A stretch of 64,000 bases of DNA from Macrostomum lignano (GCA_002269645.1 NIVC01002655.1:1-64000), one strand, 5' to 3'. Counted from the stretch's first letter, positions 11,835 through 59,132 are shown. Numbers and translations are program-made. The notes: generated by a model from the letters alone, not told the origin.

Positions 11835-12607
11835 ACCCAGATCCTCAGTTGCTGGACCACCCAGATCCTCAGTTGCCACCGCTGCCCTCCCAAATCCTCA
11901 GTTGCCAGGCCAGCCTCCCAGATCCTCAGTTGCCAGGCCAGCCTCCCAGATCCTCAGTTGCCACCGCTGCCCTCCCAAATCCTCAGTTGCCAGGCCAGCC
12001 TCCCAAATCCTCAGTTGCTAGGCCGGCCTCCCAGATCCTCAGCTGCTGGGCCAGCCTCCCAGATCCTCAGTTGCTGGGCCAGCCTCCCAGATCCTCAGTT
12101 GCTGGGCCAGCCTCCCAGATCCTCAGTTGCTGGGCCAGCCTCCCAGATCCTCAGTTGCTGGGCCAGCTTCCCAGATCCTCAGTTGCTGGGCCAGCTTCCC
12201 AGATCCTTAGCTGCTGGGCCAGCCTCCCAGATCCTCAGTTGCTGGGCCAGCCTCCCAGATCCTCAGTTGCTGGGCCAGCTTCCCAGATCCTCAGTTGCTG
12301 GGCCAGCTTCCCAGATCCTTAGCTGCTGGGCCAGCCTCCCAGATCCTCAGTTGCTGGGCCAGTCTCCCAGATCCTCAGTTGCTGGGCCAGCCTCCCAAAT
12401 CCTCAGTTGCCAGGCCAGCCTCCCAAATCCTCAGTTGCCAGGCCAGCCTCCCAAATCCTCAGTTGCTAGGCCGGCCTCCCAAATCCTCAGTTGCTAGGCC
12501 GGCCTCCCAGATCCTCAGTTGCTGGGCCAGCTTCCCAGATCTTCAGTTGCTGGGCCAGTCTCCCAGATCCTCAGTTGCTGGGCCAGTCTCCCAGATCCTC
12601 AGTTGCT
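11835..12607 (+). repeat. 28-bp minisatellite
   Basis: CCAGCCTCCCAGATCCTCAGTTGCTGGG units; explains three overlapping repetitive ORFs. Confidence 0.95.
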
Positions 12608-17332: not shown

Positions 17333-17812
17333 TGATCCTTCAGTGAGTGCATCCCATGCCCCCCACTGATCCTTCAGTGAGTGCATCCCATACCCCCACT
17401 GATCCTTCAGTGAGTGCATCCCATACCCCCACTGATCCTTCAGTGAGTGCATCCCATACCCCCACTGATCCTTCAGTGAGAGCATCCCATACCCCACTGA
17501 TCCTTCAGTGAGAGCATCCCATACCCCCACTGATCCTTCAGTGATTGCATCCAATACCCCTCACTGATCCTTCAGTGCATCCAATACCCCCACTGATCCT
17601 TCAGTGAGTGCATCCCATACCCCCACTGATCCTTCAGTGAGTGCATCCCATACCCCCACTGATCCTTCAGTGAGTGCATCCCATACCCCCACTGATCCTT
17701 CAGTGAGTGCATCCCATACCCCCACTGATCCTTCAGTGAGTGCATCCCATACCCCCCACTGATCCTTCAGTGAGTGCATCCCATACCCCTCACTGATCCT
17801 TCAGTGCATCCA
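17333..17812 (+). repeat. 33-bp minisatellite
   Basis: GATCCTTCAGTGAGTGCATCCCATACCCCCACT units. Confidence 0.95.
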
Positions 17813-18407: not shown

Positions 18408-20275
18408 ATCTCTCTCAGTACTCTCTCTCCATCTCTCTCAGTACTCTCTCTCCATCTCTCTCAATACTCTCTCTCTCCATCTCTCTCAGTACTCTCTCTC
18501 CATCTCTCTCAGTACTCTCTCTCCATCTCTCTCAGTACTCTCTCTCTCCATCTCTCTCAGTACTCTCTCTCCATCTCTCTCAGTACTCTCTCTCCATCTC
18601 TCTCAGTACTCTCTCCCCATCTCTCTCAGTACTCTCTCTCCATCTCTCTCAGTACTCTCTCTCCATCTCTCTCGTACTCTCTCTCCATCTCTCTCAGTAC
18701 TCTCTCCATCTCTCTCAGTACTCTCTCTCTCCATCTCTCTCAGTACTCTCTCTCCATCTCTCTCAGTACTCTCTCTCCATCTCTCTCAGTACTCTCTCCC
18801 CATCTCTCTCAGTACTCTCTCTCCATCTCTCTCAGTACTCTCTCTCCATCTCTCTCGGTACTCTCTCTCCATCTCTCTCAGTACTCTCTCCATCTCTCTC
18901 AGTACTCTCTCCATCTCTCTCAGTACTCTCTCTCTCCATCTCTCTCAGTACTCTCTCTCCATCTCTCTCAGTACTCTCTCTCCATCTCTCTCAGTACTCT
19001 CTCTCCATCTCTCTCAGTACTCTCTCTCCATCTCTCTCAGTACTCTCTCTCCATCTCTCTCAGTACTCTCTCCCCATCTCTCTCAGTACTCTCTCTCCAT
19101 CTCTCTCAGTACTCTCTCTCCATCTCTCTCGGTACTCCCTCTCCATCTCTCTCAGTACTCTCTCCATCTCTCTCAGTACTCTCTCTCTCTCCCTCTCTCT
19201 CAGTACTCTCTCTCTCTCCATCTCTCTCAGTACTCTCTCTCTCCATCTCTCTCAGTACTCTCTCTCCATCTCTCTCAGTACTCTCTCTCTCCCCATCTCT
19301 TTCAGTACTCTCTCTCCATCTCTCTCAGTACTCTCTCCCCATCTCTCTCAGTACTCTCTCTCCATCTCTCTCAGTACTCTCTCCCCATCTCTCTCAGTAC
19401 TCTCTCTCCATCTCTCTCAGTACTCTCTCTCCATCTCTCTCGGTACTCCCTCTCCATCTCTCTCAGTACTCTCTCCATCTCTCTCAGTACTCTCTCTCCC
19501 TTTCTCTCTCAATACTCTCTCTCCATCTCTCTCAGTACTCTCTCTCCCTCTCTCTCAGTACTCTCTCTCTCTCCATCTCTCTCAGTACTCTCTCTCTCCA
19601 TCTCTCTCAGTACTCTCTCTCCATCTCTCTCAGTACTCTCTCTCTCCCCATCTCTTTCAGTACTCTCTCTCCATCTCTCTCAGTACTCTCTCTCCATCTC
19701 TCTCAGTACTCTCTCCCCATCTCTCTCAGTACTCTCTCCCCATCTCTCTCAGTACTCTCTCCCCATCTCTCTCAGTACTCTCTCTCCATCTCTCTCAGTA
19801 CTCTCTCTCCATCTCTCTCGGTACTCCCTCTCCATCTCTCTCAGTACTCTCTCCATCTCTCTCAGTACTCTCTCTCCCTTTCTCTCTCAATACTCTCTCT
19901 CCATCTCTCTCAGTACTCTCTCTCCATCTCTCTCAGTACTCTCTCCATCTCTCTCAGTACTCTCTCTCCATCTCTCTCAGTACTCTCTCTCTATCTCTCT
20001 CAATACTCTCTCCATCTCTCTCAGTACTCTCTCCATCTCTCAACTCTCCCCATCTCTGTCTCCTCTCTCTCTCCCCCTCTCTCTCTCTTTCCATCTCTCC
20101 CTCTCTTTCAACTCTCTCTACCTCTATCCTCTCTTCACCTCTCCACATCCCCTCTCTATCTCCCTCTATCCATTTCTTTGTCTATCCCCATATCAATCCC
20201 CAATCTTTTACCTCCTTCTCCCATTTCCTTTTTACTCTTTTCTCTCTCTCTCTGGCTCCATCTCTCTCCTCAAGC
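18408..20275 (+). repeat. CT-rich compound microsatellite/minisatellite
   Basis: CTCTCTCAGTACTCTCTCTCCAT-type units followed by a pyrimidine tract; explains the 675-aa ORF. Confidence 0.95.
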
Positions 20276-22067: not shown

Positions 22068-25000
22068 ATGACGTCTTCAGCCGCTGCGACCTCCGCTAAG
22101 CCTGAAGAAATTCTCGCAGCCGTTCGTTCGGACAATCCGGACAGATTGGCCGAGCTCCTGGACGTTGCTGATGCTGGTTCGACTCGTCTCAAACTTCTGA
22201 ATGCAGCCGTTGAAGCCTCGGCCGCCGGTGCCGCTCGCCTCCTACTGGAGGACGAGCTCGAGCGGTGCCAGCAGTTGCCGGAGCCGCTGGTCTCCCTGGC
22301 GGTGCAGAGCCCCAGCCTGGCCAGCTGGGCTCTCCTGGCCGCGGCCAGGGCCGGCCGGCTGGACGCTCTTGAGCAGCTGCTCAGCGCCGAGCTGCCCGAA
22401 CAGGCTGATGCCTCGCTGTGGCGCCAGCTGTCCGGCTGTCTGGCCAAGCGCCACCCGGACACGATGCTCGACGCCATCGCCGGCGGCCGGTGCCCGCGGC
22501 TGCTCGGCCGGCTGCTGCCGGAAGCCATCGAGGCGGACGACGCCGACCTGCCGCTGCTGTCCGCCGCTGAACGGCAGGCGTTGGAGGCGGACGCGTCCGA
22601 GTTGCTTCCAGCCCGACTCCGGCCGCTGCTGCTCCGAGCCGAGCCGACGCAATCGGACAGCCGGGCTCTGGCCAGAGCGGCCGTGGCTTCAGGCAGCGCG
22701 GAACTCGTCCGCCACCTGCTGCGCCTCGGGCAGCTCCGTTCGGAGCACCTGGTCGAGCACCGGCCGGACGAACTGGTGCCGTTCGGCCACCTGGAGCTGG
22801 CCGGCGAGATGCTGCTGCTGCCACGTCCAGACCTTCTGCACTGCTGCCTGAACCTCCGGGCCGCCTGTGAGAATCAACTGAAGCGCCTCCCGCCAGCTGC
22901 CTCGCCGCTGCTGTCGCAGTCTCGTCATCAGGATGACAGCAGGCGTCGCCAAGTTGTCGCCATGTCGCCCGAAAGTCTCTGTGAGCTGCGCGACTTCGCC
23001 GAGCTGGTCTGCCTGAACGCCGTGGACCAGATCTACGCCACCTGCCCGCCGTCCTGCCAGCCGCTCGTCCACCACCACCTGCTGCGGCCGCCACCGTCAG
23101 GAGTCGGCGCCTGCCTCGCCAAGAAGTCGCCGGAGAGCTTCTTTGCCACGCGCTGCTTTGTTGAGCTGGTTGACCGGCGCTGGCGCCGAAGCGCCTACCC
23201 CAGCTCGCCGGGGCGCCGGTGCTCGAACCTGGCCTCGCCCAGGGAGAAGTTCCTGCTGCACGCCGCCGCCCTGCTGGTCTTCATGGCTCTGCACGCCTTC
23301 TACATCATCCAGCTGGACTCGCGATGGCGGTGGACCGACTCCCTCATGGTTGTCTACTTCATCAGCTACAGCCTGCAGGAGCTGCACGAGCTGCTTAGGA
23401 CTGGCAAACAGTACTTCAATATCTGGAACCTCATCGACCAGCTGCAGTTGCTGTTCCACCTGCTGGGTCTGGCCTTCAAGACCGCCTTGGTAGCCGGGGC
23501 AGCCGATGCAGGCCAGCTGCTGTACGTCTGCAGGCTCCTGCTAGGCGTATCGTTCATGTTCTGCGGCCTGAAATTTGTGCTGAAACTGCGCGCCTATCAA
23601 AAATTCGGCCCGTTCATCAACATGATGAAGGCGCTGTTCTGGGCGGATCTGCTGCCCTTCCTTGTTGCCATGTTTCTCTTTCTGGTGATCTGCAGCGGGG
23701 TCTTCTTTCACGCTCTGCTGACGCCGGGAAATCAGGTGGGATGCCATTTTCTGACCAGTGGTGCGATGCTCTACTACAGAAATTTGGGTTGTATTACCGC
23801 AGACAGCGGAGTTTTCCACCATAGACAGTGGGATTTTACTACAGACAGTGGAGGTATTACTGTGGATTGTGTGGTTTTGCCATAGACAGTGAGGTTTTAC
23901 TGCAGATAGTGTGGTTTTTGCTAGAGACAGTAGGGTTTGACTACAGACAGTGGAGTTTGACTACAGACAGTGGAGTTTGACTACAGACAGTGGGGTTTGA
24001 CTACAGACAGTGGAGTTTGACTACAGACAGTGGGGTTTGACTACAGACAGTGGGGTTTGACTACAGCCAGTGGGGTTTGACTACAGACAGTGGAGTTTGA
24101 CTACAGACAGTGGGGTTTGACTACAGACAGTGGGGTTTGACTACAGACAGTGGGGTTTGACTACAGACAGTGGAGTTTGACTACAGACAGTGGAGTTTGA
24201 CTACAGACAGTGGAGTTTGACTACAGACAGTGGGGTTTGACTACAGACAGTGGGGTTTGACTACAGACAGTGGGGTTTGACTACAGACAGTGGAGTTTGA
24301 CTACAGACAGTGGGGTTTGACTACAGACAGTGGGGTTTGACTACAGACAGTGGGGTTTGACTACAGACAGTGGGGTTTGACTACAGACAGTGGGGTTTAA
24401 CTACAGACAGTGGAGTTTGACTACAGACAGTGGGGTTTGACTACAGACAGTGAGGTTTGACTACAGACAGTGAGGTTTGACTACAGACAGTGGGGTTTAA
24501 CTACAGACAGTGGAGTTTGACTACAGACAGTGGGGTTTGACTACAGACAGTGAGGTTTGACTACAGACAGTGGGTTTGACTACAGACAGTGGGGTTTGAC
24601 TACAGACAGTAGGGTTTATATTGTTTACAGTGTTTACAGTGGTTATAGTATCTGTGGTCGAGACTATCGAAATTAATCCATCGATTTTTTAGACTAAATT
24701 TGTACAAATTTAGGGCATTTAGGGCGTCGTGCGTACGAGCTGCAAGTTTGGTCTAAAAAATCAATGAGAATTCTTTTTGAGTGTCGCTTCCTGAGCGCCC
24801 AACTTAAGGCGCCATTTTTGAGAGATTCAACGTTGTCTATGGTCCAAACTGATACACTTCTTGAAGAGGAGAAAGATAATCAGAAAGAAACTCCAAGATG
24901 ATAAGCCGCACCATGAAGAGAGCCGTAGAGATCACTGTTGCAGAAAATCCTCGAGTCATGAACGGACCCAGTCCACTGCACAGTTTACGTCAAGAAAGGT

Positions 25001-31710: not shown

Positions 31711-32524
31711 TTTAAATAGTTACTAATCAAATAATGTTCGATACCTTTTCTTTGCGTTTTCTTATTGCAACTATTGTATCATTTTTACTGAACTAATTGG
31801 TAGCTGCTTCACATTTGCGCGCCGATTCAAACCGGCTGGAACTGAACTTATTCAGATTCGGTGTCAGACCTTCTGGGCCCGCAGAAATGCTGAAGCTCTG
31901 GCGGGTTTTGGCGGACCGCCCCCCCCCTCTGACAGGGCAATTCGCGGCAAACACAGCAGTCAAGACTGTCAAATTTATCGATCGCGTGTCTCCCTCCTTC
32001 AAAAGCTTTTTTTCAACAAAAAGAATTTCGACACCCCTCTCAGGCTGCTTCACTCCAGCTCAGCTGGCCCCTGTTTTGAAGTGATCGCAACTTACTGGAT
32101 GCAATGCTGCTCTGCAAGTGAGAAGACTGACTGCATAGTCGAGTCGAGTGTTTCGATACGCTAGACCGGTTGGGTGGCGGTTTTGCGCGAGGACCATTGT
32201 AATTTTCTCGCCCACACACCTTTCCCCACCCTCCCAGCGCAAGCCCTCCACGGATCGCAGATGGTATTCGGGACGGAGAGGTAGAGTGGTAGCGGCAGGG
32301 GGAGATGCGAGGGGCAGCAGACGGTAGGCGGCCGAGGAGCGCCCCTCCCCGCCAGCAGTGCCGAATGGCGTCTCCTGAACGGCGGCGAGAGGTGGCGGAA
32401 GCGCAGCGTGCTCAATAGACTTTATAATGACGCCAGATCGTTCAAAGCATCGGAATAAAGTGGAGAAGTAAGGAAATAAAGTTATTTGCTGATAACCGGA
32501 GACCAACTCGCTTCATCTCCAACG

Positions 32525-35500
32525 ATGCGTCCGTTCCTGCTGCTGACGGCTCTTCTGGTGGCCTGCGTTCAGGCCTCGATGGCTAAGAGTAAGTTTTCTA
32601 ATTAATAGAATTACGACTGCTTCAGGAAATTTAACTAGCCTGCTGTACCGTCCATCACGCTTTTCCACTGTGTCTTCGTTGCAGAAATGTGCCCAAATGC
32701 TGTGATCTTCAATTCGTACAACTTCCCAACTTACTACCTGACCCAGAGGGGCAACGGCGAGATGGGCATCGCCATTGGCAACGGGACCAGGTTTGTTGAG
32801 CGGGACGCTCTTGATGGAACAAAGGACGGAATTTCGCTGGAGTCGCTGTCTCAACCGGGCTACTTCCTGTGCAACGTCGACAACATCATCAAGTTGGTGA
32901 AAACCGACAAGAGCGCGCTGTTCAGCCGGGAGGCCTCGTTCCTGCTTGAGAAGGCTGGGGAAGGCTACTATCGATTCAAGAGTACGACGCACTCCAAGCA
33001 TTACCTGAGACATCAGTCAATGAAGCTGAAGCTCATGAGCTGGACAGATACCAACCTGTTCAAGGCTGATTCTTCGTTCGGAGTTGTCTGCGCAAGCGGT
33101 AAGTCGCTTGTTTCTTGTATGCCTCCCAGGGACGGAAAGTTTTCGTTGGTTTTTTTTCTGGGTAGAAAACTACAAAGACTGAATTTGTTACAGACAAACT
33201 GTTCAAGCTGGACGTTTGCGACGGCGAGTTCCATCTGATCTCGAAGAATTATCCCAAATACTCCGTCAAGGCCGGTATCGACGTGATCTCCACCATCAGC
33301 ACCACCAACGGCACCAGACTGAAGTTCGTCACGCCAGCTCTGAACGGCAATCCTCGAGCCGTGTCCATCGAGTCAGCTGAGAAGCCTGGCCACTTCCTCA
33401 ACACGGTTGCCGACCACTTTGTCATGATGACAAAGTTCGAAAACACAGCAGAGTTCAGGAACGCCTCCACCTTTAAGGTAGTCATCATGAGCAACGGATA
33501 CGTGCGACTGCAGTCCCTGAGGAACCCTCGCCACTACATCCGGCACAGCGAGTTCAAGCTGCGGCTGGAACGCTGGGCCGAGACCAAGCTGTACGACCAG
33601 GACTCGTCGTGGAAGATCGACTGTGCCCGTAAGGCTTCTAGACGTATCTGTCACTAACCAATCAACCATGCATAGCACGAGCGCAATGGGAGCTAACTCA
33701 CTTTTATCTGAGTCCAACGACAGTGTACTCGATGTAATAATGAAGCTAACTCTTCTTTTTTCTTGAGTAAAGCAAACTGACTTGATTAACTCTCGTTCAC
33801 ATCGCATCAAATTAAGCCCGATCTCATTTTGACATCAATTAGTAGCTCATTTTCATATGATCTCACATTTGAAACTTCTACTTTGCCAGTACTTCTCTCT
33901 TCGACCTCTCCCTCCGTCGCTCTCTCAGTCTTTCTCTTTGTCTCTTTGTCTCTCTCTCGTCTCTTTCTATCTCTCCGTCTCTCCGTCTCTCTCTGCATCT
34001 CTCTCCGTCCTTCTTTGTCCCTGCGTCTCTCCCTGGCTCTCAATGTGTCTCTTATTCTCTGACTTTCTTACTCACTCAGTCTACCCTACTCTATGTACAT
34101 GTAGCTCAGTTACAGTCTTGTGTCACTGTCACACAGTCACCACAGAATCTATATACTCGTATGTTGACATCTTCTCAAACCCGCCTTTTTGACTTACAAA
34201 CATGCACTACTACACTGTGCCTCAACCCACCTCATGCAGTCATTCCCTGCGAGACCAAAGCTTTCGTGTACAACCCCGCCTACGAGAACGCGCGCGGTCC
34301 TCACTGCGAGTTCGGTAAGACCGAGTGGTGTTTTGTTGCCATGAAAACTGCAAACTGCTAAACTTTGCTAAATTATTGTTGCCAAGAGGAGGCAAGTCGT
34401 CTTATACCTCTGACCACCCCGCAGCCCCGCCCAAGTGGTGGCAGATTAGCCCATTCTGCAAGGACCTCCCGGCCAACCGGCCCTCGCCCATCAACATCGA
34501 GATGGGACTCTGCAAGAACAAGTCGGCCAAGGTGAAGAAAATCGTACTGGGCAAGGGCTGGCACGATGAGAGAAAGTTCATTGTGAAGAACAACGGACAC
34601 TCCAGTGAGTTGATGCTCTGTAGGAAGGCAGGGCACTACCTTAAAAAGCACATTAGCTGCTGAGGTCAGAACACACCTGCAAAATCTGAGAAGATATTTG
34701 TACCATAGGACATCAGAGTGCTGTTAGAGTCTATAAAGCACCTATTAGAGCTAAGAAATCACATGCTACAGCTTAGAAATCACATGCTACAGCTTAGAAA
34801 TCACATGCTACAGCTTAGAAATCACATGCTACAGCTTAGAAATCACATGCTACAGCTTAGAAATCACATGCTACAGCTTAGAAATCACATGCTACAGCTT
34901 AGAAATCACATGCTACAGCTTAGAAATCACATGCTACAGCTTAGAAATCACATGCTACAGCTTAGAAATCACATGCTACAGCTTAGAAATCACATGCTAC
35001 AGCTTAGAAATCACATGCTACAGCTTAGAAATCACATGCTACAGCTTAGAAATCACATGCTACAGCTTAGAAATCACATGCTACAGCTTAGAAATCACAT
35101 GCTACAGCTTAGAAATCACATGCTACAGCTTAGAAATCACATGCTACAGCTTAGAAATCACATGCTACAGCTTATAAATCACATGCTACAGCTTAGAAAT
35201 CACATGCTACAACTCATGAAGAACATTCAACATCCTGAGAATCACCTGTCCAATCCTTCGCCTGTGCATCCTCTCCTCTCCAGTCCAAGCTGACGCGGTG
35301 AACAGCGCCGACCTGACGGTGACCGGAGGCCACCTCAACGGCACCTACAACTGCTTCCAGTTCCACTTCCACTGGGGCAGCGCCGCCAACGTTGAGAAGG
35401 GCATCGGCAGCGAGCACCGGCTTTTTGACGCCACCGGCAAGGCGCTCCCGACTCCCATGGAGGTGCACATCGTGTGCAAGAGGCAGGAGCTGAGCATGTC

Positions 35501-38388
35501 GAAGGCCATCAACACCACCGACGCCATCACTGTGCTGGGCGGCTTCATCCACCAGATGAACGTGAGTACTTGAAGTCTGCGTGTGGGAGACAGCGTTTCC
35601 GCCCCCAGTCAGCTGCGTTTCCGCCCCCAGTCAGCTGCGTTTCCGCCCCCAGTCAGCTGCGTTTTCCGCCCCCAGTCAGCTGCGTTTCCGCCCCCAGTCA
35701 GCTGCATTTCCGCCCCCAGTCAGCTGCGTTTCCGCCCCCAGTCAACTGCATTTCCGCTCCCCAGTCAACTGAATTTCCGCTCCCCAGTCAACTGCATTTC
35801 CGCCCCCAGTCAGTTGCGTTTCCGCCCCCAGTCAGCTGCGTTTCCGCCCCCAGTCAGCTGCGTTTTCCGCCCCCCAGTCAGCTGCGTTTCCGCCCCCAGT
35901 CAGCTGCATTTCCGCCCCCAGTCAGCTGCGTTTCCGCCCCCAGTCAGCCGCACCCCCCCCCCAGTCAGCTGCATTTCCGTCCCCTCAGTCAGGCTGGCCC
36001 TTCGCCCCTTCCATCACGCTGCAGTCTCGCACTGACTGACACAAACCTCAATCAATTTCAGCCTAAAGACCACGACGGCTGGGCTGGTCACGTGATCGCG
36101 CAGGTGCTATCCAACATGACAGAACTTTTCAAACCCGTGGGACACGGAGCTGTTGTGTCAGCCAAGGGTATGTTTACCAGAAAATGACTATTATACTTTT
36201 TTTATATATGTGGTAGCCAGAAAACACACTACATGTATTGACTTCCTCAGGTAGCTGTATCAACTTTATGAAAATCTGCTTTTCCTCCTACGTAAAAGCT
36301 TGTTAGGAGGGCAGGAGCAACCTGCGTTCTAACTTGTAGTTCACGTAGATACCTGACTACCTGCATCTACTTGAAAAAATCATGTTTCGATACATTAGAT
36401 TAATCAGAAACCAATACATGACCCAAATGAGCACTCCATTACCCAGTTGAGCACTCCAAGATTCAGTTGAGCACTCCAAGATTCAGTTGAGCTCTCCAAG
36501 ATTCAGTTGAGCACTCCAAGACCCAGTTGAGCACTCCAAGACCCAGTTGAGCACTTCAAGACCCAGTTGAGCACTCCAAGATTCAGTTGAGCACTCCAAT
36601 ACCCAGTTGAGCACTCCATTACCCACTTGAGCACTCCAAGATTTGGTTGAGCACTCCAAGACCCAGTTGAGCACTTCATGACCCAGTTGAGCACTCCAAG
36701 ACCCAGTTGAGCACTCCAAGACCCAGTTGAGCACTCCCAGACCCAGTTGAGCACTCCATTACTCACTTGAGCACTTCAAGACTCAGTTGAGCACTCCAAG
36801 ACCCAATTGAGCACTCCAAGAACCAGTTGAGCACTATGACCTAGTTGAGCACTCCCAGACCCAGTTGAGCACTCCATTACCCACTTGAGCACTCCAAGAT
36901 TCGGTTGAGCACTCCAAGACCCAGTTGAGCGCTTCATGACCCAGTTGAGCACTCCAAAATTCAGTTGAGCACTTCAAGACCCAGTTGAGCACTCCATTAC
37001 CCAGTTGAGCACTCCAAGACCCAGTTGAGCACTCCAAGACCCAGTTGAGCACTCCAAGACCCAGTTGAGCACTCTATGACCCAGTTGAGCACTCAAAGAT
37101 TCGGTTGAGCACTCCAATACCCAGTTGAGCACTTCATGATCCAGTTGAGCACTTCATGACCCAGTTGAGCACTCCAAGATTCGGTTGAGCACTCCAATAC
37201 CCAGTTGAGCACTTCATTACCCAGTTGAGCACTCCAAGACCCTGTTTAGCACTCCAAGACCCGGTGGAGCATCCATACGCACTCCATGAGCAGCCCGTCT
37301 CAGAGCAGCCACCTGCACTCCTCAGACGTGGAGACGGTCGAGCTGCAGCTCCGTGACCTGCTGCCGGAGAGCCTGCACCGGTTCGTGAACTACGACGGCG
37401 CCTTCACTACCCCAAGCTGCAACCCGGTGGCGCAGTGGCATCTCTTCACCGACTCCATGAAGATCCGGAAGGAGCTGGTGAGCGGTTTGGTCGTTTGTGA
37501 TGAGGTTTCTCAGCCTTGTTGAGCAGTCGCAAAACAGTTCTTCCTATTGTAGGCTATAGATGAAGCTATAGATCAAGCTAATAGATCAGCTGTAGATCAG
37601 CTGTAGATCAGGCTTGTAGATCAGGCTGTAGACCAGGCTTTATAGTGCATATCAGGCTATAGATCAGGGTATAAATCAGGCTGTAGATCAGGCTGTAGAT
37701 CAGGCTGTAGATCAGGCTGTAGATCAGGCTGTAGATCGGGCTGTAGATCAGGCTGTAGTTCAGGCTGTAGTTCAGGCTGTAGTAGATCAGGCTGTAGATC
37801 AGGCTGTAGATCAGGCTGTAGATCAAGCTGTAGATCAAGCTGTAGATCAGGCTGTAGATCAGGCTATAGATCAGGCTATAGATCAGGCTATAAATCAGGC
37901 TGTAGATCAGGCTGTAGATCAAGCTATAGATCAGCTGTAGATCAGCTGTAGACCAGGCTATATAGATCAGGATATATAGATCAGGCTTGTAGATCAGGCT
38001 GTAGATCGGGCTGTAGATCAGGCTGTAGTTCAGGCTGTAGTTCAGGCTGTAGTAGATCAGGCTGTAGATCGGGCTGTAGATCAGGCTGTAGATCAAGCTG
38101 TAGATCAGGCTGTAGATCAGGCTGTAGATCAGGATGCGTACAATTGTACAACACACCCAGTGTACAATTAGCTACAGCTAACGAACCCCTGACCCCTCGA
38201 TGCGCCTCCTTCAGCTGCTGAAGTTCACCAAGACCTTTTTCGACAAAGCCAAGAAGCGCCCAATGGTGGACAACTTCCGGCCTGTGATGAGCCGGCACGG
38301 CCGGGAGATCCGCTGCAGCTTCAGCAACAAGGAGGCCTCGCCAGAGGAGGTCAAGAAGGTGGCCAGCGAGACGCGGGTCGTGTCGTAG
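32525..38388 (+). CDS. Secreted protein: signal peptide + two AbfB (CBM42-like beta-trefoil) domains + alpha-carbonic anhydrase (about 625 aa, 9 exons)
   Basis: Exons 32525-32588, 32685-33098, 33194-33628, 34240-34314, 34425-34604, 35284-35561, 36062-36167, 37326-37477, 38215-38388; all phases compatible. Signal [20 protein letters not shown]. AbfB-type motifs [18 protein letters not shown]...[25 protein letters not shown]...DQDSSW. CA motifs [43 protein letters not shown]. Confidence 0.9.
34748..35212 (+). repeat. 21-bp minisatellite in CA intron 5
   Basis: GCTTAGAAATCACATGCTACA x about 22; explains the MLQLRNH ORF. Confidence 0.97.
35595..35990 (+). repeat. 22-bp minisatellite in CA intron 6
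   Basis: CGTTTCCGCCCCCAGTCAGCTG units. Confidence 0.93.
36420..37270 (+). repeat. 20-bp minisatellite in CA intron 7
   Basis: GACCCAGTTGAGCACTCCAA units. Confidence 0.95.
37550..38135 (+). repeat. 12-bp minisatellite in CA intron 8
   Basis: GTAGATCAGGCT units. Confidence 0.95.
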
Positions 38389-40319
38389 ACTTGACAGTTT
38401 GAAGTTACATTAGCAGAGCATGTAGGGAGTGATTACTGCAGACTGAATAGTTAGACTTGCTCCTGTGGTTTATGGTTTATTATCTTCAAAATTTCCTTAG
38501 CAATTGTTGAGAAGCGAGTTTCTTTTAAGAAAAAATTCAACTATATATTGGTCCTTTCGTGTGCTATCTAAAGTTTAAAATAACAGCGTAATTGTGATTT
38601 TAAACTGCAAAAAGTTTTGTTTAAATTAAAAACCAAGCGTATACCTTGTTGTTGAAAAATAAATTGGTAAAAGGTGCGTTTAAATAAGAAATGCTAAATG
38701 CTAAATCTTCCTGTTCACAATGAGAAATCAGACGCTCTACAAGCTCGAATCTCGCGATTTCATCGCAAAAATATTTGATGTTTTGAAGTAGCGAAAGTGA
38801 TCTCGCAAAACTTCGATTATTTAAATCTTTGACAATTTCTGAATGCGACCACGAGAGCGAGGAAAGTATAGACGATGCACCCATAAAGACGATACCCGTC
38901 CACATCGTGAGAGCTGGTGTTAATTTTTTTTGCACATTGTTTCAGTGAGCTGGAACAATTCACAAATACAAGTCGGAAACATCATGCGCTTTTTTGCTGT
39001 CGTTAAGAAACAATAACATTTGAGTAGCTAAGCTAGTAAGGCGCCGGTCACAGTGGACCATGGTGGCAAGGCGGTTCTCAGTCGATCAATCTATCAAATC
39101 AGTTAGCGAAACTGCCAATAGTGCAAAATCGGCGCTAGAGATGTACTCTGTGCACTCTAGATTCGCCAGGCGGCTCGGGTAATGAATAATGCGGTCTCCG
39201 ATGTTCGAGTTAGCCTATCATCAGCGCTACGAGAGGCTAGTTGGCGCGTTGAAGGCCAAAAGTACAATTTCTCGTATTTAGCAATGTAATAGTACATGTA
39301 GCTACCCCATAGTCTCGCCACTGCAAGAATCCCCTGCACAAGTCCCCTCTGTACCTTCATGGCCAATGCGATCAAGTCGCAGCAGTGCAGAGTCCCTTAG
39401 CATCGGCTATGACTTCGAGATTGACAGCAAAAAAGACACTAGTTGGCAGGTAAGTGCTAAGCCCCCTCTAGTCGGAAGCCCGATTTCGAAAGTTCCGGTT
39501 TGGTGAGCCAGGACGCACGTGTTGGTGGCAGCGGGTTAGTTAATCTGCGGATTAGCTGATCTCTATTTCAAAATTCTCCCTGCTTGTCTCTCGCTGTCCC
39601 TCTCTTAGCTATAGGACCTAAGACTGCTCGCCACAAGATCAAGCTACCATGGGTTGATGGCTTGACCATCTGACAGGAGTGGGGGGCAGGACTCTAATTG
39701 ATTTATTTCTGAGACCTGAGTCCCGAAGGCTTCCACGAAAGGGGCCGAAAGCCATCAAGTACATGTACGTACAATATACAACAAGTACATGATGGCATGC
39801 ATCATCCATACTTTTTTGTCGCGATTAGCGCATGGTACGCCATACGAGCGTAATTAACGTTAAAATCTTGTTAATCGACGAAATTTTACTCATGTGTACA
39901 ATTGTATCATTACACTTACATGTACAACTGTCGGGAGAGGAGAGGGAATATTCTATTCCACAAGCTATAGCCATATAAAGCCAGCCCTCAAACTTACATT
40001 TTCTAGGATACGAAGTTAGGCTTGTAGGGTTAGTGTTTCTAGCCTTTACGGTTTTCGTCTCATTATAAGTCGTCCTTCGGTTTTATTAAGATAATGCATT
40101 GAAGCCCTAAGAGGATAAGACTTAGTTTTATGTTATGTTATGTTATGTTTTACTTTTATGATATGGTTTTCTTACCAGAACTGAAAATTAAGGAAAAAAT
40201 TAAAATTGGTATTAATCCAAAACAGTATCTAATATGTGATTTTTTCTGTTTTTGCGTTTCGGGTTACGATATTTTTAGCATGTTAGATCCATTAGTCCAT
40301 TAGTCCATCGCTTTTCATA

Positions 40320-45200: not shown

Positions 45201-46911
45201 ATGAACAGCGACGATTTAATATGGCAGATTATAAACAACAGCTTCTGCAGTTTTATGACCAAGACTAAAACGTCAAAGTTTTGTCGAAATGAGTACAACT
45301 TGACCGGCTTGTGCAATCGGCACTCTTGCCCGCTGGCCAACTCCCAGTATGCCACCGTCCGAGAGGAGGACGGCGTCATCTATCTCTACATGAAGGTGGC
45401 CGAGCGGGCCCACCTGCCGGCCAAGATGTGGGAGCGAGTTAAACTGCATCGAAACTACGAGCGGGCCATTGGCCAGATTAAAGAGAAGCTTATCTATTGG
45501 AACAATTGGATTCGACGGAGGGTTATTGCCAGGTGGGTGCCCTGTCTGTATTGCCCTGTCTGCGGTGCACTGTCTGCGGTGCACTGTATGTGGGTGCCCT
45601 GTCTGTGGGTGCACTGTCTGTGGGTGCACTGTCTGTGGGTGCACTGTCTGCGTACACTGTCTATGGGTGCACTGTATGTGGGTGCCCTGTCTGTGGGTGC
45701 ACTGTCTGTGGGTGCACTGTCTGTGGTTGCACTGTCTGCGTACACTGTCTATGGGTGCACTGTATGTGGGTGCCCTGTCTGTGGGTGCACTGTCTGTGGG
45801 TGCACTGTCTGTGGTTGCACTGTCTGCGTACACTGTCTATGGGTGCACTGTCTGTGGGTGCACTGTCTGTGCGTACACTGTCTATGGGTGCACTGTCTGT
45901 GGGTGCACTGTCTGGTGCCGTCTGTGGTGCCCTGTCTGGTCCACTGTCTGTGGTGCATTGTCTGTATTTCCCTGTCTGTGGGTGCACTGTCTGTGGGTGC
46001 TGCACTGTCTGTGGGTGCCCTGTCTGTGGGTGCTTCACTGTCTGTGGGTGCACTGTCTGTAGGTGCTGCACTGTCTGTTGGTGCCCTGTGTGTAGGTGCT
46101 GCACTGTCTGTAGGTGCTGCACTGTCTGTATGTGCATTGTCTGTGGGTGCCCTGTCTGTGGTGCACTGTTTGTGGGTGCCCTGTCTGTGGGTGCACTGTC
46201 TGTGGGTGAACTGTCTGTGGTAGCCCTGTCTGTATTGCCCTGTCTGTGGGTGCACTGTCTGTCGTGCCCTGCCTGTAGGTGCAGCACTGTCTGTGGGTGC
46301 ACTGTCTGTAGGTGCTGCACTGTCTGTGGGTGCACTGTCTGTGGGTGCACTGCATTGTAAACAACTTTGCAAAAAGCCCGCTACCTCGCGATCCTTGTCC
46401 CGTCCCCTTTTTTAGATTCGACCGCCTACTTGAGGTGCAGAAGCGCAGCCGCAGGCTGGTGCTCACCTCCGAGACGAAGCTCGTGCCGCTGTCGCGCAAA
46501 GTTGAACGTCGCGAACGTCGACGAGAGGATAAGGCTCTGGTTCGGGCCGGCCTGGAGACCGCCATCGAGAAGGAGATGCTGGATAGGCTGCGGGCCGCCA
46601 ACCCCGAGGAGTTCGTCAACGTAGACCGGGCCGCCTACGAGAAAGCGTTGCAGGCCGTTGAAGTTGAAGACGAGGAGGACGACGAGGAGTCTGAAGAAGA
46701 AGAAGAGGACGAGTCCGAAAGCGAAACCGAATACGTGGAAGATTTTGACGAATCTGAAGAGGAGATCGAAGACATCCAGGAGCAGCAGGAGGAGGGCGAG
46801 GAAGAGGAGCCGCCGGTGCGCCAGAAACTGACCCTCAGCAGTAGAGGAGCGGCTGCCATCGCGCCGCCGAGGAAGCGAGCAAAGGTGACAGTTGAGTACG
46901 ACTCAGACTGA
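45201..46911 (+). CDS. MAK16: MAK16 60S ribosome biogenesis protein (275 aa, 2 exons)
   Basis: Exons 45201-45532 and 46416-46911 (phase 2). [35 protein letters not shown]-like [28 protein letters not shown] and an acidic tail. Confidence 0.97.
45533..46352 (+). repeat. Degenerate about 15-bp minisatellite filling the MAK16 intron
   Basis: GTGGGTGCACTGTCT units starting at the donor GT. Confidence 0.93.
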
Positions 46912-47122: not shown

Positions 47123-48670
47123 TCATCCCCAATATCCCTCAGTGTGAGCTGCTGCCTCATCCCCAGTATCCCTCAGTGTGAGCTGCTGCCTCATCCCCAG
47201 TATCCCTCAGTGTGAGCTGCTGCCTCATCCCCAATATCCCTCAGTGTGAGCTGCTGCCTCATCCCCAATATCCCTCAGTGTGAGCTGCTGCCTCATCCCC
47301 AATATCCCTCAGTGTGAGCTGCTGCCTCATCCCCAATATCCCTCAGTGTGAGCTGCTGCCTCATCCCCAATATCCCTCAGTGTGAGCTGCTGCCTCATCC
47401 CCAGTATCCCTCAGTGTGAGCTGCTGCCTCATCCCCAGTATCCCTCAGTGTGAGCTGCTGCCTCATCCCCAATATCCCTCAGTGTGAGCTGCTGCCTCAT
47501 CCCCAATATCCCTCAGTGTGAGCTGCTGCCTCATCCCCAGTATCCCTCAGTGTGAGCTGCTGCCTCATCCCCAATATCCCTCAGTGTGAGCTGCTGCCTC
47601 ATCCCCAGTATCCCTCAGTGTGAGCTGCTGCCTCATCCCCAGTATCCCTCAGTGTGAGCTGCTGCCTCATCCCCAGTATCCCTCAGTGTGAGCTGCTGCC
47701 TCATCCCCAGTATCCCTCAGTGTGAGCTGCTGCCTCATCCCCAATATCCCTCAATGTGAGCTGCTGCCTCATCCCCAATATCCCTCAGTGTGAGCTGCTG
47801 CCTCATCCCCAGTATCCCTCAGTGTGAGCTGCTGCCTCATCCCCAATATCCCTCAGTGTGAGCTGCTGCCTCATCCCCAATATCCCTCAGTGTGAGCTGC
47901 TGCCTCATTCCCAATATCCCTCAGTGTGAGCTGCTGCCTCATCCCCAGTATCCCTCAGTGTGAGCTGCTGCCTCATCCCCAATATCCCTCAGTGTGAGCT
48001 GCTGCCTCATCCCCAATATCCCTCAGTGTGAGCTGCTGCCTCATCCCCAATATCCCTCAGTGTGAGCTACTGCCTCATCCCCAATATCCCTCAGTGTGAG
48101 CTGCTGCCTCACCCCAGTATCCCTCAGTGTGAGCTGCTGCCTCACCCCCAGTATCCCTCAGTGTGAGCTGCTGCCTCATCCCCAATATCCCTCAGTGTGA
48201 GCTGCTGCCTCATCCCCAATATCCCTCAGTGTGAGCTGCTGCCTCATCCCCAATATCCCTCAGTGTGAGCTGCTGCCTCATCCCCAATATCCCTCAGTGT
48301 GAGCTGCTGCCTCATCCCCAATATCCCTCAGTGTGAGCTGCTGCCTCATCCCCAATATCCCTCAGTGTGAGCTACTGCCTCATCCCCAATATCCCTCAGT
48401 GTGAGCTGCTGCCTCACCCCAGTATCCCTCAGTGTGAGCTGCTGCCTCATCCCCAATATCCCTCAGTGTGAGCTGCTGCCTCATCCCCAATATCCCTCAG
48501 TGTGAGCTGCTGCCTCATCCCCAGTATCCCTCAGTGTGAGCTGCTGCCTCATCCTCAATATCCCTCAGTGTGAGCTGCTGCCTCATCCCCAATATCCCTC
48601 AGTGTGAGCTGCTGCCTCATCCCCAATATCCCTCAGCTGTTGTCCTCTCCACAATATCCCTCAGTGTGAT
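47123..48670 (+). repeat. 34-bp minisatellite, about 45 copies
   Basis: CATCCCCARTATCCCTCAGTGTGAGCTGCTGCCT units. Confidence 0.97.
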
Positions 48671-48988
48671 CTTTTTGTGCTATGCAGGAACATTCTGAGA
48701 GTAACTTTATCTAGCATAAATTGCTAGAAAAATCATTCCTGAAGTTTTTTTATTTGTCAGTTATATTTACTCATTTTTTCGATAAACTACTTCGTGGAAG
48801 TAGTATTGTGGGAGAGTATTAGAGATTATCATTGTTTTTATTGTTATCATTAATACATAAAGATTAACAGCGAGTAACAACATCCATGCTTTTGTGCGAG
48901 CTTTGTGCAAACTATATAGGGAAATTTCGTGTCGAGAATATTACTAGGAATAGTAGTATTGTTGTTTCTGTCGGCCAGGTTGATAATT

Positions 48989-49522
48989 AAAGCCAATCAA
49001 GTGGGGAATCCCCATTCACTGCAGCAGCAGCCACTGTTGCAGAACTGCACTCGGCCATAGACAATAAAGCCAATCAAGTGGGGAATCCCCATTCACTGCA
49101 GCAGCAGCCACTGTTGCAGAACTGCACTCGGCCATAGACAATAAAGCCAATCAAGTGGGGAATCCCCATTCACTGCAGCAGCAGCCACTGTTGCAGAACT
49201 GCACTCGGCCATAGACAATAAAGCCAATCAAGTGGGGAATCCCCATTCACTGCAGCAGCAGCCACTGTTGCAGAACTGCACTCGGCCATAGACAATAAAG
49301 CCAATCAAGTGGGGAATCCCCATTCACTGCAGCAGCAGCCACTGTTGCAGAACTGCACTCGGCCATAGACAATAAAGCCAATCAAGTGGGGAATCCCCAT
49401 TCACTGCAGCAGCAGCCACTGTTGCAGAACTGCACTCGGCCATAGACAACAAAGCCAATCAAGTGGGGAATCCCCATTCACTGCAGCAGCAGCCACTCTT
49501 GCAGAACTGCACTCGGCCATAA
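48989..49522 (+). repeat. 77-bp tandem repeat, about 7 copies
   Basis: AGCC starts at 48991, 49068 and 49145 (period 77). The unit contains GGGGAATCCCC and TGCAGCAG...CTGTTGCA. Confidence 0.96.
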
Positions 49523-50850: not shown

Positions 50851-52442
50851 CGCTGTTGCTGTTGCTGCTGCAAAAGCAGCTCCCCCGAAGTCGGCCGCCT
50901 CTTTTTTGTCGCCTTCTTCTTGGCAGCCAACTGGGCCGCGTAGTTGTCTCTGGCGCTCCAGCCGGGGTGCATCCGCATGTGAAGCTCCTTCTCTTTGCGG
51001 GCCAGCTCGTAGTATCTGGCCTGCTCGTCTCTGGACAGAGCGTGCCACTGCGGGTTGTTGGGGAGGAATTAGAGTATATGCCTGTCTTTTGGCATTTATT
51101 CAGGCAACTGCATAGTGATTGTTTAGTCACCTGTTTAGTGAGTGTTTAGACACCTGTTTAGTGAGTGTTTAGACACCTGTTTAGTGAGTGTTTATACACC
51201 TGTTTAGTGAGTGTTTAGACACCTGTTTAGTGAGTGTTTAGACACCTGTTTAGTGAGTGTTTAGACACCTGTTTAGTAAGTGTTTAGACACCTGTTTAGT
51301 GAGTGTTTAGACACCTGTTTAGTGAGTGTTTAGACACCTCTTTAGTAAGTATGAGCGTATTCAGACCCCCGTCTTGCTCAACTGCTATTAATTTTGCGCA
51401 ATGCATGTCATTCAGTCTGCTGCAATTGCTGGCACAGCCCTCACCTTCCGTCCCAGAATCTGGTTGATAGCCGCCGACTCCTTGAGAGTGCACTCAGCCA
51501 CCACCTTGGCTCGCATCTCCTTCATGAACAGCATGAATGCGTTCAGTGGCTTCTTGACGTGCGGCACCTTCTTGATGCCGCCGCTGTTGCCGCTGGCACC
51601 GCCGCTGCCGCTTGGCATCTTGCTGACGCCGGCGAGGCCTCCGGATTGACCGCCTCTGCTGCCCATTGCAGACGAAGAGGCTGCACCGCCTATGGCGGCT
51701 TCGTAGGCGTCGCAGCTGCCGCCCAGCTGATGCTGGACAGGAAGGCCGGTGTGGTATTGATGATGCTGCATAGCTCGCGGCTGCTGCTGCTGCTGCGGCG
51801 GCGGCGGCGTTGTGTACATCGCATGGTGATGAAAGCTTCCGTATCCGACTGCGCCATTGCTGCCACCGCTGACCATCCCGAATCTGCTGCCGCTGCCAAC
51901 GCTGCTGCTGGCCGAGTACGCAGCAGCAGCGGCCGCAGCTGCCGCCGCCGCCGCAGCCGAGTGGTCCACCATGCCGCCGCCGCTGCCGCCGCCGTTGCCA
52001 CCGGCGGCCCAGCAGCTGCCAAAGTCCACCGGGCTGCTGCCGTAGAATGCGGCAGCTGCTGCGGCACTCGGCGGCAGCGATGAAGGTGGCGGCGGCGGCG
52101 GTTGCGGAGCCAGCAGAGACTCCGCAGCGGCTGCCGCGGACGCTGAGCTGCAGTGCTGCAGGCTGTTGTAGACGGGCCGGCCGTAGCCTGCAAGCGCGTG
52201 GGATTTGCGGACTGCAGAGGAGCCTCTGGTGAAATTTGTCTGCTATTTATCAGCAAAAAATGCAGAGCCTGAAGGGAGTCAAGGCCTATAGACATGCATA
52301 AATAGGGGGGGGGGGTTTGACGTTCGTGGGGAGGGGGGGACAAAGGAGCAGCGCTTTCAAAGAGGGACCAGACTGAATACACAGAGGCTGCCGCATCGCT
52401 CTCACCGTGCGAGTCCTGCACTTGATGCTCGTAGCCGGACAT
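50063..52442 (-). CDS. TCF/LEF: TCF/LEF (pangolin-family) HMG-box transcription factor, about 398 aa, 4 exons
   Basis: Exons 52442-52406, 52187-51445, 51047-50647, 50078-50063. HMG box [40 protein letters not shown]|[36 protein letters not shown], basic tail KKKATKKRR, then poly-Q. The first and last coding exons are less certain than the HMG exons. Confidence 0.92.
50098..50290 (-). mobile_element. tRNA-derived CORE-type SINE in the last TCF intron
   Basis: Minus strand: A-box-like TAGTCATTGGTT, B-box GGTTCGATTC, then GTGTCCTTGAGCAA...CAGTTCACCCAGCTGTAAAATGGG resembling the CORE (MIR-type) domain. Confidence 0.7.
50293..50638 (+). repeat. 33-bp minisatellite in the last TCF intron
   Basis: CTACTGTAGTTTGGTAGAGAATCTGCAATCCGC units. 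Confidence 0.95.
51120..51350 (+). repeat. 23-bp minisatellite in the TCF HMG-box intron
   Basis: ACACCTGTTTAGTGAGTGTTTAG units. Confidence 0.93.
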
Positions 52443-54586: not shown

Positions 54587-55055
54587 CGCTGGCGCCTCTG
54601 GTGCTGGCGCCTCTGGTGCTGGCGCCTCTGGTGCTGGCGCCTCTGGTGCTGGCGCCTCTGGTGCTGGCGCCTCTGGTGCTGGCGCCTCTGGTGCTGGCGC
54701 CTCTGGTGCTGGCGCCTCTGGTGCTGGCGCCTCTGGTGCTGGCGCCTCTGGTGCTGGCGCCTCTGGTGCTGGCGCCTCTGGTGCTGGCGCCTCTGGTGCT
54801 GGCGCCTCTGGTGCTGGCGCCTCTGGTGCTGGCGCCTCTGGTGCTGGCGCCTCTGGTGCTGGCGCCTCTGGTGCTGGCGCCTCTGGTGCTGGCGCCTCTG
54901 GTGCTGGCGCCTCTGGTGCTGGCGCCTCTGGTGCTGGCGCCTCTGGTGCTGGCGCCTCTGGTGCTGGCGCCTCTGGTGCTGGCGCCTCTGGTGCTGGCGC
55001 CTCTGGTGCTGGCGCCTCTGGTGCTGGCGCCTCTGGTGCTGGCGCCTCTGGTGCT
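54587..55055 (+). repeat. 15-bp minisatellite (CTGGTGCTGGCGCCT)n
   Basis: About 31 perfect units, open in several frames. Confidence 0.98.
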
Positions 55056-57272: not shown

Positions 57273-58449
57273 GTAAGTTTATTTACCAATCTATATTGTT
57301 TTGTACAGAGAAGAACTAGTTCTTTCCATTGGCTATTTAATTTTAATGAATCATGCTTGAGTGAGTGCTAGTCAGGAGTCTTCATGAAGTATAGGTCAAC
57401 TAGTTATTAATGTCAAATTTACACTTATAAGTTATTGTGATGTCAAAGGTAAATTGTATTTAATAAATTTAAATTAGGATATTGTCATAGGATCCTTATG
57501 AATTCTAGACTCTAGAAGGTTATATATACATAAAAAAATTCTGGCATCTAAATGACCCCTTTCAAGTTGGTGTACTAATTTTAGTATACAAATTTATGCC
57601 ATTTTTTGGCTTATAGCCTACAAATGACTGCGCAGTCATTTCGTTCAAATGCCATATTTTTGTCTACTGGCAGACAAAACAACTTTTTGAAAAAAAAAAT
57701 TATAGTATAGCTATATAGCTAGTAAAGCTAATTTTTCATAATTAAATATGGCAGTGCTTATCCCTATGGTACCGTAGGAATAATTTCTGTCTTATTCCAA
57801 TGGTACCATGGGAATAATTTTCTGCTTATCCGCATGGCACACTGACGAGATAGCTGTCATATCTTCTATTTGATGTGTTGCATTATTTAAGTTGGTTTAC
57901 TAATTGAAATAGGCTATCATTGGTTTAACTTACCTTGATCTATGGTTCTACCCAATGTACAATCAATGCAAATTATATATATCACAAGCTATGGAATGAA
58001 GTATTTATAGAAGGGAGACATCACAGGTTGCCAGAGTCAAACTTTCCATGCAGTTTTTATCCATAAGGTATGCCTTGAACTCATAGGAGTCCTTAAAAAA
58101 AGTTGGTTGCGCTTGGGCAATCGGTTTAAAAAAGAAGTCTATGTATTTCTCTGTCCCAATTGCTTCAGAAATGCATCTACTAATAATAGGTCTGCCTGCT
58201 AAGACCCAAAAAGGAATCAGCCAGGTGGCCGGGTCCTTGTAAATTTTTGGGAGCAGGTAAAAAATGCCAAGAATGGAAGTTCTCTCTGGGACAAAGAAAA
58301 GAAAACTTTTTTAAATATGAACTTTTTGTTACATAAATCAAGGAAGATCCCCCTAATGAATTTCGCAGTCTCAGGTTGCAGTGACTGGTCCAGCTATTGA
58401 TAGGCATTAGTGTCAAGCAATTGATTATAGGCTGCAAATTTGTAATCCT

Positions 58450-58534
<85 letters not shown>

Positions 58535-59132
58535 AGAAAGAGAGAGAGAGAGAGAGAGAGTTGAGAAAGAAGAAAGGAGAAAGGAGAGATGGAATAAAGA
58601 AGAGGGAAGAGAAGAGAGGAGTAAGGAAAGAGAGGAGTTAGAAGAGGGGAAAGAGAAGAGTACACAGGGCAGGAAAGAAGAGAGTAGAGATGACAGTAAA
58701 GAGAGGGGGTGAGAGAGCAAAGATGAAAGTGAACAGATGATATATGCGAGGAGAGTGGATAAAAAGAGAGAAGACAAGAGAGGGGAGAAGGAGAAAGGAG
58801 AGAAGAGAAGAGAAGAAATGAGAAATGAGAAAGGAAAGAGGTAAGAGAGGAGTCAAAAGAGGGGAAATAGAAAAGTACAAAGGAGAGAGGTAAGAGAGCA
58901 TGCGAGTATAAGAGAGTAAAGATAACAGATGAAGGAGGGGAGATAAGAGAGAAGAGAGGAGAGATAAGAAATAAGAGATGAGAGATGAGAGGTGAGACAA
59001 AGGGAGGGAGAGAAGTAAGTGAGGAGAGAGGAAGGGAGGGAGAGAATCGAGAAGACAGGGGAAAGGATGAGAGAAAGGAAAGAGGGGAGAGATAAGAGAG
59101 GAGAAGAGATGAGACAGGAGAGAGCAGAGAGA

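Follow-up and report, generated by a model that had tools for sequence, protein, structure and literature searches.

A nine-exon gene at 32525-38388 on the plus strand of a 64,000-nt stretch of the Macrostomum lignano genome (NIVC01002655.1:1-64000, assembly GCA_002269645.1; hereafter the window, to whose first letter all coordinates refer) encodes two tandem AbfB/CBM42 modules joined to an alpha-carbonic anhydrase (CA) domain. The fusion is real: it is documented by the cDNA of a relative, by peptides from M. lignano and by the anatomy of the gene. From its sequence features we propose, with moderate confidence, that the product is a secreted, N-glycosylated, disulfide-stabilized and active alpha-CA held on extracellular glycans by its two AbfB/CBM42 trefoils. 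The AbfB-CA combination is so far seen in one genus, and both UniProt and one proteomics table already contain it without comment.

Conceptual splicing of 32000-39000 gave nine plus-strand exons, every border of which carries an AG acceptor or a GT donor (Table 1). Joined, they form an uninterrupted 1878-nt frame of 625 amino acids ending at a TAG (38386-38388); an in-frame stop lies 5' of the ATG at 32525, and two poly(A) signals follow the gene (ATTAAA at 38625 and AATAAA at 38658). A first-pass annotation, made by a model from the DNA alone, had arrived at the same length and at junctions 33628, 34240 and 34425, all reproduced exactly here, and its single open reading frame (ORF) running from a signal peptide through two AbfB repeats to a CA was borne out by splicing and Pfam. 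Introns 5 to 8 are each nearly filled by a distinct minisatellite, and a CT-rich low-complexity tract lies inside intron 3 (33894-34005).

A 2370-nt intron-less Logan contig (L001, run SRR30276812) contains a single uninterrupted 632-aa ORF, P0002, with 70% amino acid identity to the window protein. Aligned by blastn, the contig matches the window in eight collinear blocks (66-86% identity) whose ends coincide with exons 2-9 and across which the query is contiguous, and the protein alignment of P0002 to the window model is collinear across every junction. L001 is a spliced mRNA from a related organism with the same AbfB-CA architecture. Evidence from M. lignano itself comes from Dataset S2 of Wunderer et al. 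2019 (PMC6410801), in which sheet footprints_Trypsin_intact_1 assigns three unique peptides to transcript RNA815_2810.1, a 2596-nt entry of type 5UTR_CDS_3UTR whose only annotated domain is the CA Pfam family. Each of the three tryptic peptides is an exact match to the window model. Codon 305, which is divided between exons 3 and 4 and hence between trefoil 2 and the CA part, lies within one of them, IDCALIPCETK; therefore, one polypeptide bears both halves. The CA part lacks its own start codon and signal peptide. Intron 3 was scanned for an alternative first exon with a signal peptide, as a CA-only isoform would need, but only low-complexity ORFs with poor donors turned up, and read-through into this intron hits a stop after nine codons. 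The possibility raised in the first-pass annotation that the AbfB and CA parts are separate genes thus fails, as both the L001 cDNA and the junction peptide join them. In UniRef50, RNA815_2810.1 best matches a fish entry under the name TRPM4, which is probably a gene model merged in error. The AbfB part may have been overlooked because the transcript was annotated with the CA family only and with a TRPM4-named match.

The two N-terminal modules belong to the AbfB family (PF05270), which matches two stretches of the whole protein (E=6.5e-34). Taken alone, the products of exon 2 (65.7 bits, E=6e-18) and exon 3 (62.4 bits, E=6e-17) each score far above the gathering cut-off of 22.8. Among PDB sequences, the AbfB half matches the CBM42 module 3KMV (E=1.4e-11) as well as 9FNK, 3AKF and 9NXI. 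An AlphaFold2 model of trefoil 1 built from a 96-sequence alignment had a predicted local distance difference test score (pLDDT) of 97.2, and its best Foldseek matches were all CBM42 modules (3KMV, 3AKI, 9NXH, 9FNK and 1WD3; template modeling [TM] scores of 0.84-0.90), which supports a beta-trefoil fold for this module; trefoil 2 is predicted from its sequence to share it. With strong matches by Pfam, AlphaFold2 and Foldseek, the lack of an AbfB or beta-trefoil match that had been envisaged as an outcome did not materialize. A full-length AlphaFold2 model of P0002 from a 9-sequence alignment (pLDDT 47, with the trefoils near 30) was unusable for domain packing, and only the single-trefoil model is reliable.

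Sugar pockets of the CBM42 type can be recognized from the arabinose complex of AtAbf43C (9NXH), in which an occupied pocket comprises the His of an R-H pair, a Tyr at +3 and an Asp 18-19 residues further on (beta pocket H70/Y73/D89; gamma pocket H118/Y121/D136; PMC12493170). In the C. thermocellum CBM42, changing the beta or gamma Asp to Ala weakened binding and changing the alpha Asp did not, according to the account of Ribeiro et al. given in PMC12493170. We compared the pocket columns of both trefoils with those of 94 single-domain family members. The beta His and beta Asp, each present in 94/94, are lost in both trefoils (LCNV...REASF and LNTV...RNASTF), and both alpha pockets are also gone, with NGT sequons at that position. 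The gamma His (94/94 in the family) and gamma Asp (92/94) are kept as H131 and D150 in trefoil 1 and as H277 and D296 in trefoil 2. At the gamma +3 position, where the family has Phe (73/94) or Tyr (15/94), trefoil 2 has the family-typical Phe280 and trefoil 1 an unusual Met134. The first-pass annotation had therefore been correct in assigning one His...Asp site to each trefoil, which corresponds to the gamma pocket. All four Macrostomum trefoils (window and P0002) have the gamma R-H and Asp, while the beta pockets of P0002 retain only one of their four residues, the Asp of trefoil 1 (KRDATF), and the R-H in neither trefoil.

The CA part matches Pfam Carb_anhydrase (PF00194) over residues 332-604 (E=4e-46; 158 bits against a cut-off of 27), covering positions 4-254 of the 254-position profile, and a Pfam search of the whole protein found no domain besides AbfB and Carb_anhydrase. 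Identity to human CA II is about 30%. Aligned to the human CA II sequence, with a numbering that agrees with the PDB alignment, the domain keeps the proton shuttle His64 (H388), the zinc ligands His94, His96 and His119 (H417, H419 and H451), and Gln92 (Q415), Glu106 (E433), Glu117 (E449), Thr199 (T545), Thr200 (T546) and Trp209 (W555), together with the Cys23/Cys203 pair of extracellular isozymes (C341/C549) and the equivalents of Val121 and Val143. The best PDB sequence matches, 4PXX and 4HBA, are CA II variants into which a Cys23-Cys203 disulfide was engineered. The domain therefore looks active as judged from its residues, and the alignment upholds the His64, zinc His, Glu106, Thr199 and Cys assignments of the first-pass annotation.

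The sole hydrophobic stretch of the protein is its N-terminal signal peptide, and the C-terminus is hydrophilic. A hydrophobicity scan found no hydrophobic window beyond residues 1-20, and with it neither a C-terminal glycosylphosphatidylinositol (GPI) signal nor a transmembrane helix, in agreement with the earlier reading that a membrane anchor is missing. The mature chain contains 13 cysteines and seven N-X-S/T sequons. From the signal peptide, the missing anchor, the sequons, the Cys pair and the footprint peptides, we infer that the protein is secreted.

Enzyme activity, sugar binding, ligand and site of action are what we infer from these features. As each trefoil keeps the gamma pocket only, our working model is that the tandem acts as a bivalent, low-affinity lectin. 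It would hold the enzyme on glycan-rich extracellular material, most likely the worm's own secretion onto a surface or substrate, and the tethered enzyme would there speed the interconversion of CO2, HCO3- and H+. Such glycan tethering could control local pH or carbonate. The footprint peptides are compatible with deposition on the substrate and provide a hint of it. We speculate further that the enzyme is a working part of the worm's secreted surface or adhesive material, its trefoils docking it on the glycans of the giant mucin-like secretion (e.g., the O-glycosylated adhesive protein Mlig-ap2, from the same footprints) and its activity setting bicarbonate and pH within milliseconds, a scenario that we consider improbable as it stands. 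If true, pH and bicarbonate at the interface might help a secreted glycoprotein to unfold or expand, or assist the rapid attach-release cycle; the protein would then be the first carbonic anhydrase targeted by a lectin, and temporary bioadhesion would include a step of chemical control.

Several observations weigh against a glycan-tethered, active enzyme. Four of the six trefoil pockets are lost, among them the beta pocket found in all 94 sampled family members, and sequons (NGT, NGT and NAS) occupy former pocket positions. With Met at the +3 position of gamma pocket 1, the trefoils may have altered or lost their sugar specificity. In the CA pocket, Phe replaces Leu198 and Ala replaces Val207. 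The footprint sheet also lists ribosomal proteins, calmodulin, peroxiredoxin and a vitellogenin-like protein (PMC6410801), and with many intracellular proteins in the sample, neither secretion nor an adhesive role is proven by it. RNA815_2810.1 ranks low in that sheet (score 9.0) and is not among the entries listed from the part of the peanut agglutinin (PNA) pull-down dataset and the part of the tail dataset that were covered. The supplements of other M. lignano papers yielded neither expression data nor the identifier of this transcript. Finally, the estimates of selection given below are rough.

The trefoils could instead be modules that no longer bind sugar and serve the secreted CA in protein interaction, in oligomerization or as spacers, which we regard as unlikely but worth keeping in view. 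The loss of both beta and both alpha pockets, the sequons at former pocket sites and the Met in place of the +3 aromatic in gamma pocket 1 are all as expected of such modules. Their gamma R-H and Asp, however, are kept in all four Macrostomum trefoils while the beta pocket has been free to decay, and the gamma Asp-to-Ala change weakened binding in the C. thermocellum module (Ribeiro et al., as relayed in PMC12493170). Selection points the same way: of the trefoil subdomains, gamma subdomain 2 is conserved best, with 81% identity. Nei-Gojobori comparison of the window coding sequence with the L001 cDNA gave dN/dS values of 0.19 for trefoil 1 (60% amino acid identity), 0.23 for trefoil 2 (68%), 0.07 for the Cys-flanked segment that follows them (78%), the most constrained part of the protein, and 0.16 for the CA (79%), all of them rough because dS is about 1 and near saturation. 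Every domain is under purifying selection, and no part seems to decay.

Alternatively, a tandem that still binds sugar might target foreign glycans of the arabinofuranose or galactofuranose type, from diatoms, algae or bacteria, so that the CA would act on food or microbes in digestion or defense. Furanosides of the arabinofuranose or galactofuranose type are not known from animal glycans, and diatoms serve as the culture food of M. lignano, both of which speak for a foreign ligand. Likewise, characterized CBM42 modules bind arabinofuranose side chains via the same His/Asp pockets (PMC12493170). Against this stand the nearest relatives of the trefoils, which are uncharacterized multi-AbfB proteins of metazoans, and the sole hint of localization, which is to substrate footprints and not to the gut. 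We consider a foreign ligand rather improbable, and favor tethering to the worm's own secreted glycans.

It is very improbable that the CA domain is a non-catalytic binding module like those of CA-related proteins and receptor phosphatases. The L198F and V207A changes would fit such a role. However, inactive CA-related proteins generally lack zinc ligands, and the zinc His residues, His64, Glu106, Thr199 and their network are kept here, in the relative and, where covered, in a M. lignano paralogue. An artefact, whether from neighboring lectin and CA genes mis-joined by conceptual splicing or from contaminant DNA, is of negligible probability: although the initial model was assembled by eye, no support for it is left after the junction-crossing peptide from M. 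lignano itself, the collinear intron-less cDNA of the relative, a CA part with no start or signal peptide of its own beside an intron 3 with no convincing alternative first exon, and introns, minisatellites and neighboring genes typical of an animal genome.

How the fusion arose is suggested by relatives of its parts. The AbfB sequences nearest to the trefoils come from Hydractinia, Hydra, Clytia and the tunicate Clavelina, where they make up stand-alone, secreted multi-AbfB proteins; bacterial and metagenomic sequences rank next, and no AbfB protein from another flatworm appeared among the phmmer matches described below. The statement in the first-pass annotation that AbfB domains occur in animals mainly in otogelin-type proteins was thus incomplete: otogelin and otogelin-like are metazoan extracellular proteins with an AbfB domain (PMC4948705), and the nearest relatives are the stand-alone proteins of hydrozoans and a tunicate. 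On the CA side, M. lignano paralogue A0A1I8GEY2 comprises a signal peptide, the Cys-flanked segment and a CA (57% identity) without trefoils; some 35 residues around His64 are missing from its sequence, probably because the model has a gap there. A fragment, A0A1I8G9Z6, has a homologous Cys-flanked segment, and CA identity to the paralogues is 57-59%. Exon 1 ends in phase 1, the four exons that follow it are symmetric (phase 1-1), and each trefoil is encoded by a single exon. In a neighbor-joining tree, each trefoil pairs with its P0002 counterpart and all form one clade in 198/200 bootstraps, a support that may be inflated by long-branch effects. Judged from this anatomy, the simplest history would begin with a secreted flatworm CA that gained a single phase 1-1 trefoil exon after the exon for its signal peptide and ahead of its first CA exon. 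Tandem duplication of the new exon would have followed, and both events would predate the split of the window and P0002 sequences. A0A1I8GEY2 looks like the ancestral form that preceded the insertion. The gene would be a clean case of domain accretion, with phase-1 exon insertion, tandem exon duplication and persistence of the unmodified paralogue.

Among known systems, the extracellular alpha-CAs (human CA VI, secreted; CA IV and XV, GPI anchored; CA IX, XII and XIV, transmembrane) share with the M. lignano protein the PF00194 fold, the zinc and shuttle site, the Cys23-Cys203 pair, a signal peptide and N-glycosylation sequons. In contrast to them, it has no GPI or transmembrane anchor and carries two CBM42 trefoils and a Cys-flanked extension. 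The CBM42 modules of GH43 and GH54 arabinofuranosidases (C. thermocellum CBM42A, 3KMV; AtAbf43C, 9NXH; SaAraf43A, 3AKF-3AKI; Aspergillus kawachii AbfB, 1WD3) have the Pfam AbfB domain and the gamma His/Asp spacing in common with it, and the predicted fold of trefoil 1 superposes on 3KMV, 3AKI and 9NXH with TM scores of 0.88-0.90 and a root-mean-square deviation of 1.3-1.8 Å. Unlike these, the M. lignano modules sit on a CA in place of a glycoside hydrolase, are in tandem, have lost the beta pocket and are encoded by an animal gene with introns. The multi-AbfB proteins of hydrozoans and tunicate (Hydractinia XP_057315557.1, Hydra XP_065671834.1, Clytia, and Clavelina CAK8691440.1) resemble it in their tandem trefoils after a signal peptide, at 26-37% identity, and in an alpha pocket that is already degenerate, but their beta and gamma pockets are both retained and an enzyme domain is absent. 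Otogelin differs in its gel-forming VWD-C8-TIL units, none of which were found by Pfam in the M. lignano protein.

Other invertebrate CAs have also acquired extra modules, as in the tandem-CA protein of Physella (XP_059163193.1), the CA+DSBA protein of Capitella and the nacrein-type shell CAs, but the partner modules differ. Nacrein carries a repeat insert inside its CA domain, whereas none is seen in that of M. lignano. The Capitella teleta protein (CAPTEDRAFT_227828, 860 aa) combines a DSBA-like thioredoxin domain (PF01323) with two CA domains and a C-terminal hydrophobic tail, and mollusc proteins such as that of Physella acuta have three tandem CA domains. Polypeptide GalNAc-transferases, which consist of a catalytic domain and a C-terminal CBM13/ricin-type beta-trefoil lectin, offer a working analogy only, in that an appended beta-trefoil steers an enzyme to glycans; their catalytic domain is unrelated and their lectin is C-terminal. 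CAs are positioned at surfaces through a GPI anchor, a transmembrane helix or a fusion partner. If our proposal is true, carbohydrate-binding modules would be a different means of confining CO2, bicarbonate and pH chemistry to a glycan matrix. With the architecture so far in one genus, the finding has modest practical weight. M. lignano offers RNA interference, transgenesis and a studied adhesive system, and the function is therefore directly testable.

The rarity of the architecture was assessed by a phmmer search with P0002 against 1.84 billion representative proteins (one per 50% cluster, with eukaryotic transcriptomes unevenly covered), which gave 2753 matches at E<=1e-3. The best 150 of these 2753 were re-scanned with separate AbfB and CA segments. 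Among the best 150, both domains occurred only in Macrostomum, namely in P0002 and in a frame-shifted M. lignano model (P0003), and the other multi-stretch matches were tandem-CA proteins (e.g., Physella) or multi-AbfB proteins. An AbfB+CA protein would exceed the 76.5-bit floor of this list and should therefore have been seen. The census rests on this run, as a single-domain AbfB profile search gave short single-domain proteins only. The architecture is thus not common in databases; the first-pass annotation had named commonness there as a finding that would count against it. Its impression that the combination is undescribed stands in part. We found no paper describing the combination in the literature on Macrostomum or on AbfB with carbonic anhydrase. 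However, a model with both Pfam domains is in UniProt, and the transcript appears in the proteomics table cited above.

That UniProt entry, A0A1I8HD97, is the nearest database protein and came from a separate earlier search. It is a M. lignano sequence 98% identical to the window protein, named only "carbonic anhydrase," with both Pfam domains assigned automatically. Its N-terminal 29 residues correspond to translated 5' untranslated region (window 32438-32524) with a 1-nt indel, and it therefore represents the transcript of a near-identical second copy. It also lacks VKNNGHS, a stretch that includes His64 (window 34583-34604), and the residue after the gap is Leu in place of Ile. None of the splice sites in the window accounts for this loss, and the residues are retained in the relative's cDNA; the gap may be an error in the model or reflect a true isoform.

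Table 1. Positions of the AbfB-CA gene, its peptides and other features in the 64,000-nt window
Feature	Position	Strand	Description
Exon 1	32525-32588	+	Start codon and signal peptide
Exon 2	32685-33098	+	414 nt; AbfB/CBM42 beta-trefoil 1 (predicted), aa 23-158
Exon 3	33194-33628	+	435 nt; AbfB/CBM42 beta-trefoil 2 (predicted), aa 160-304
Exon 4	34240-34314	+	75 nt; Cys-flanked N-terminal segment of CA part
Exon 5	34425-34604	+	CA fold begins; C341, H388
Exon 6	35284-35561	+	Zinc site and network: Q415, H417, H419, E433, E449, H451
Exon 7	36062-36167	+	Central CA segment; aligned block of relative's cDNA at 36060-36131
Exon 8	37326-37477	+	T545/T546, C549, W555
Exon 9	38215-38388	+	C-terminal CA strands, hydrophilic 21-aa tail, stop; no GPI or transmembrane signal
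H131 codon	33011-33013	+	Gamma His, trefoil 1
D150 codon	33068-33070	+	Gamma Asp, trefoil 1
H277 codon	33544-33546	+	Gamma His, trefoil 2
D296 codon	33601-33603	+	Gamma Asp, trefoil 2
H388 codon	34598-34600	+	Equivalent of CA II His64
13-residue peptide	33208-33246		aa 165-177; exon 3
Peptide IDCALIPCETK	33616..34259		aa 301-311; crosses exon 3/4 junction
12-residue peptide	34260-34295		aa 312-323; exon 4
Minisatellite, intron 5	34749-35211		21-mer x22
Minisatellite, intron 6	35593-35992		22-mer x18
Minisatellite, intron 7	36420-37275		20-mer x43
Minisatellite, intron 8	37551-38133		12-mer x48
Two overlapping ORFs	6503-8916	-	395 and 437 aa; first has hAT-family C-terminal dimerization domain, E=5e-5
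Tetratricopeptide repeat (TPR) protein ORF	9994-10761	+	
ORFs of 608 and 232 aa	22059-25944	+	Hydrophobic channel-like segments; no Pfam match at E<=1e-3
MAK16 homologue	45201-46911	+	Ribosomal_L28e N-terminal, E=5e-36; Mak16 C-terminal region, E=4e-18
HMG-box gene fragment	51412-52029	-	TCF/SOX-like box, E=7e-10
Example minisatellite arrays	503-966, 5325-6074, 9354-9657, 11836-12607, 17333-17806, 23823-24617, 47123-48669, 48988-49521, 54588-55055		

The remainder of the window is rich in repeats, with more than 20 distinct minisatellite arrays (periods of 12-77 bp) in 64 kb. One 35-bp unit (GCACTGACCTCAGCTGAGTGACTGG...) occurs in two arrays (5325-6074 and 9354-9657) that lie on either side of the hAT-like ORFs, which are probably a frameshifted hAT-type transposon remnant. 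An intron taken up by a 15-bp minisatellite (45533-46352) lies between the two domains of the MAK16 homologue. Long CT/GA-rich low-complexity arrays of opposite strand skew are found at 18408-20041 and at about 58180-59790 (GC skew of -0.67 at 18-20 kb and +0.63 at 58-60 kb), and these yield spurious long Ser/Leu-rich ORFs.

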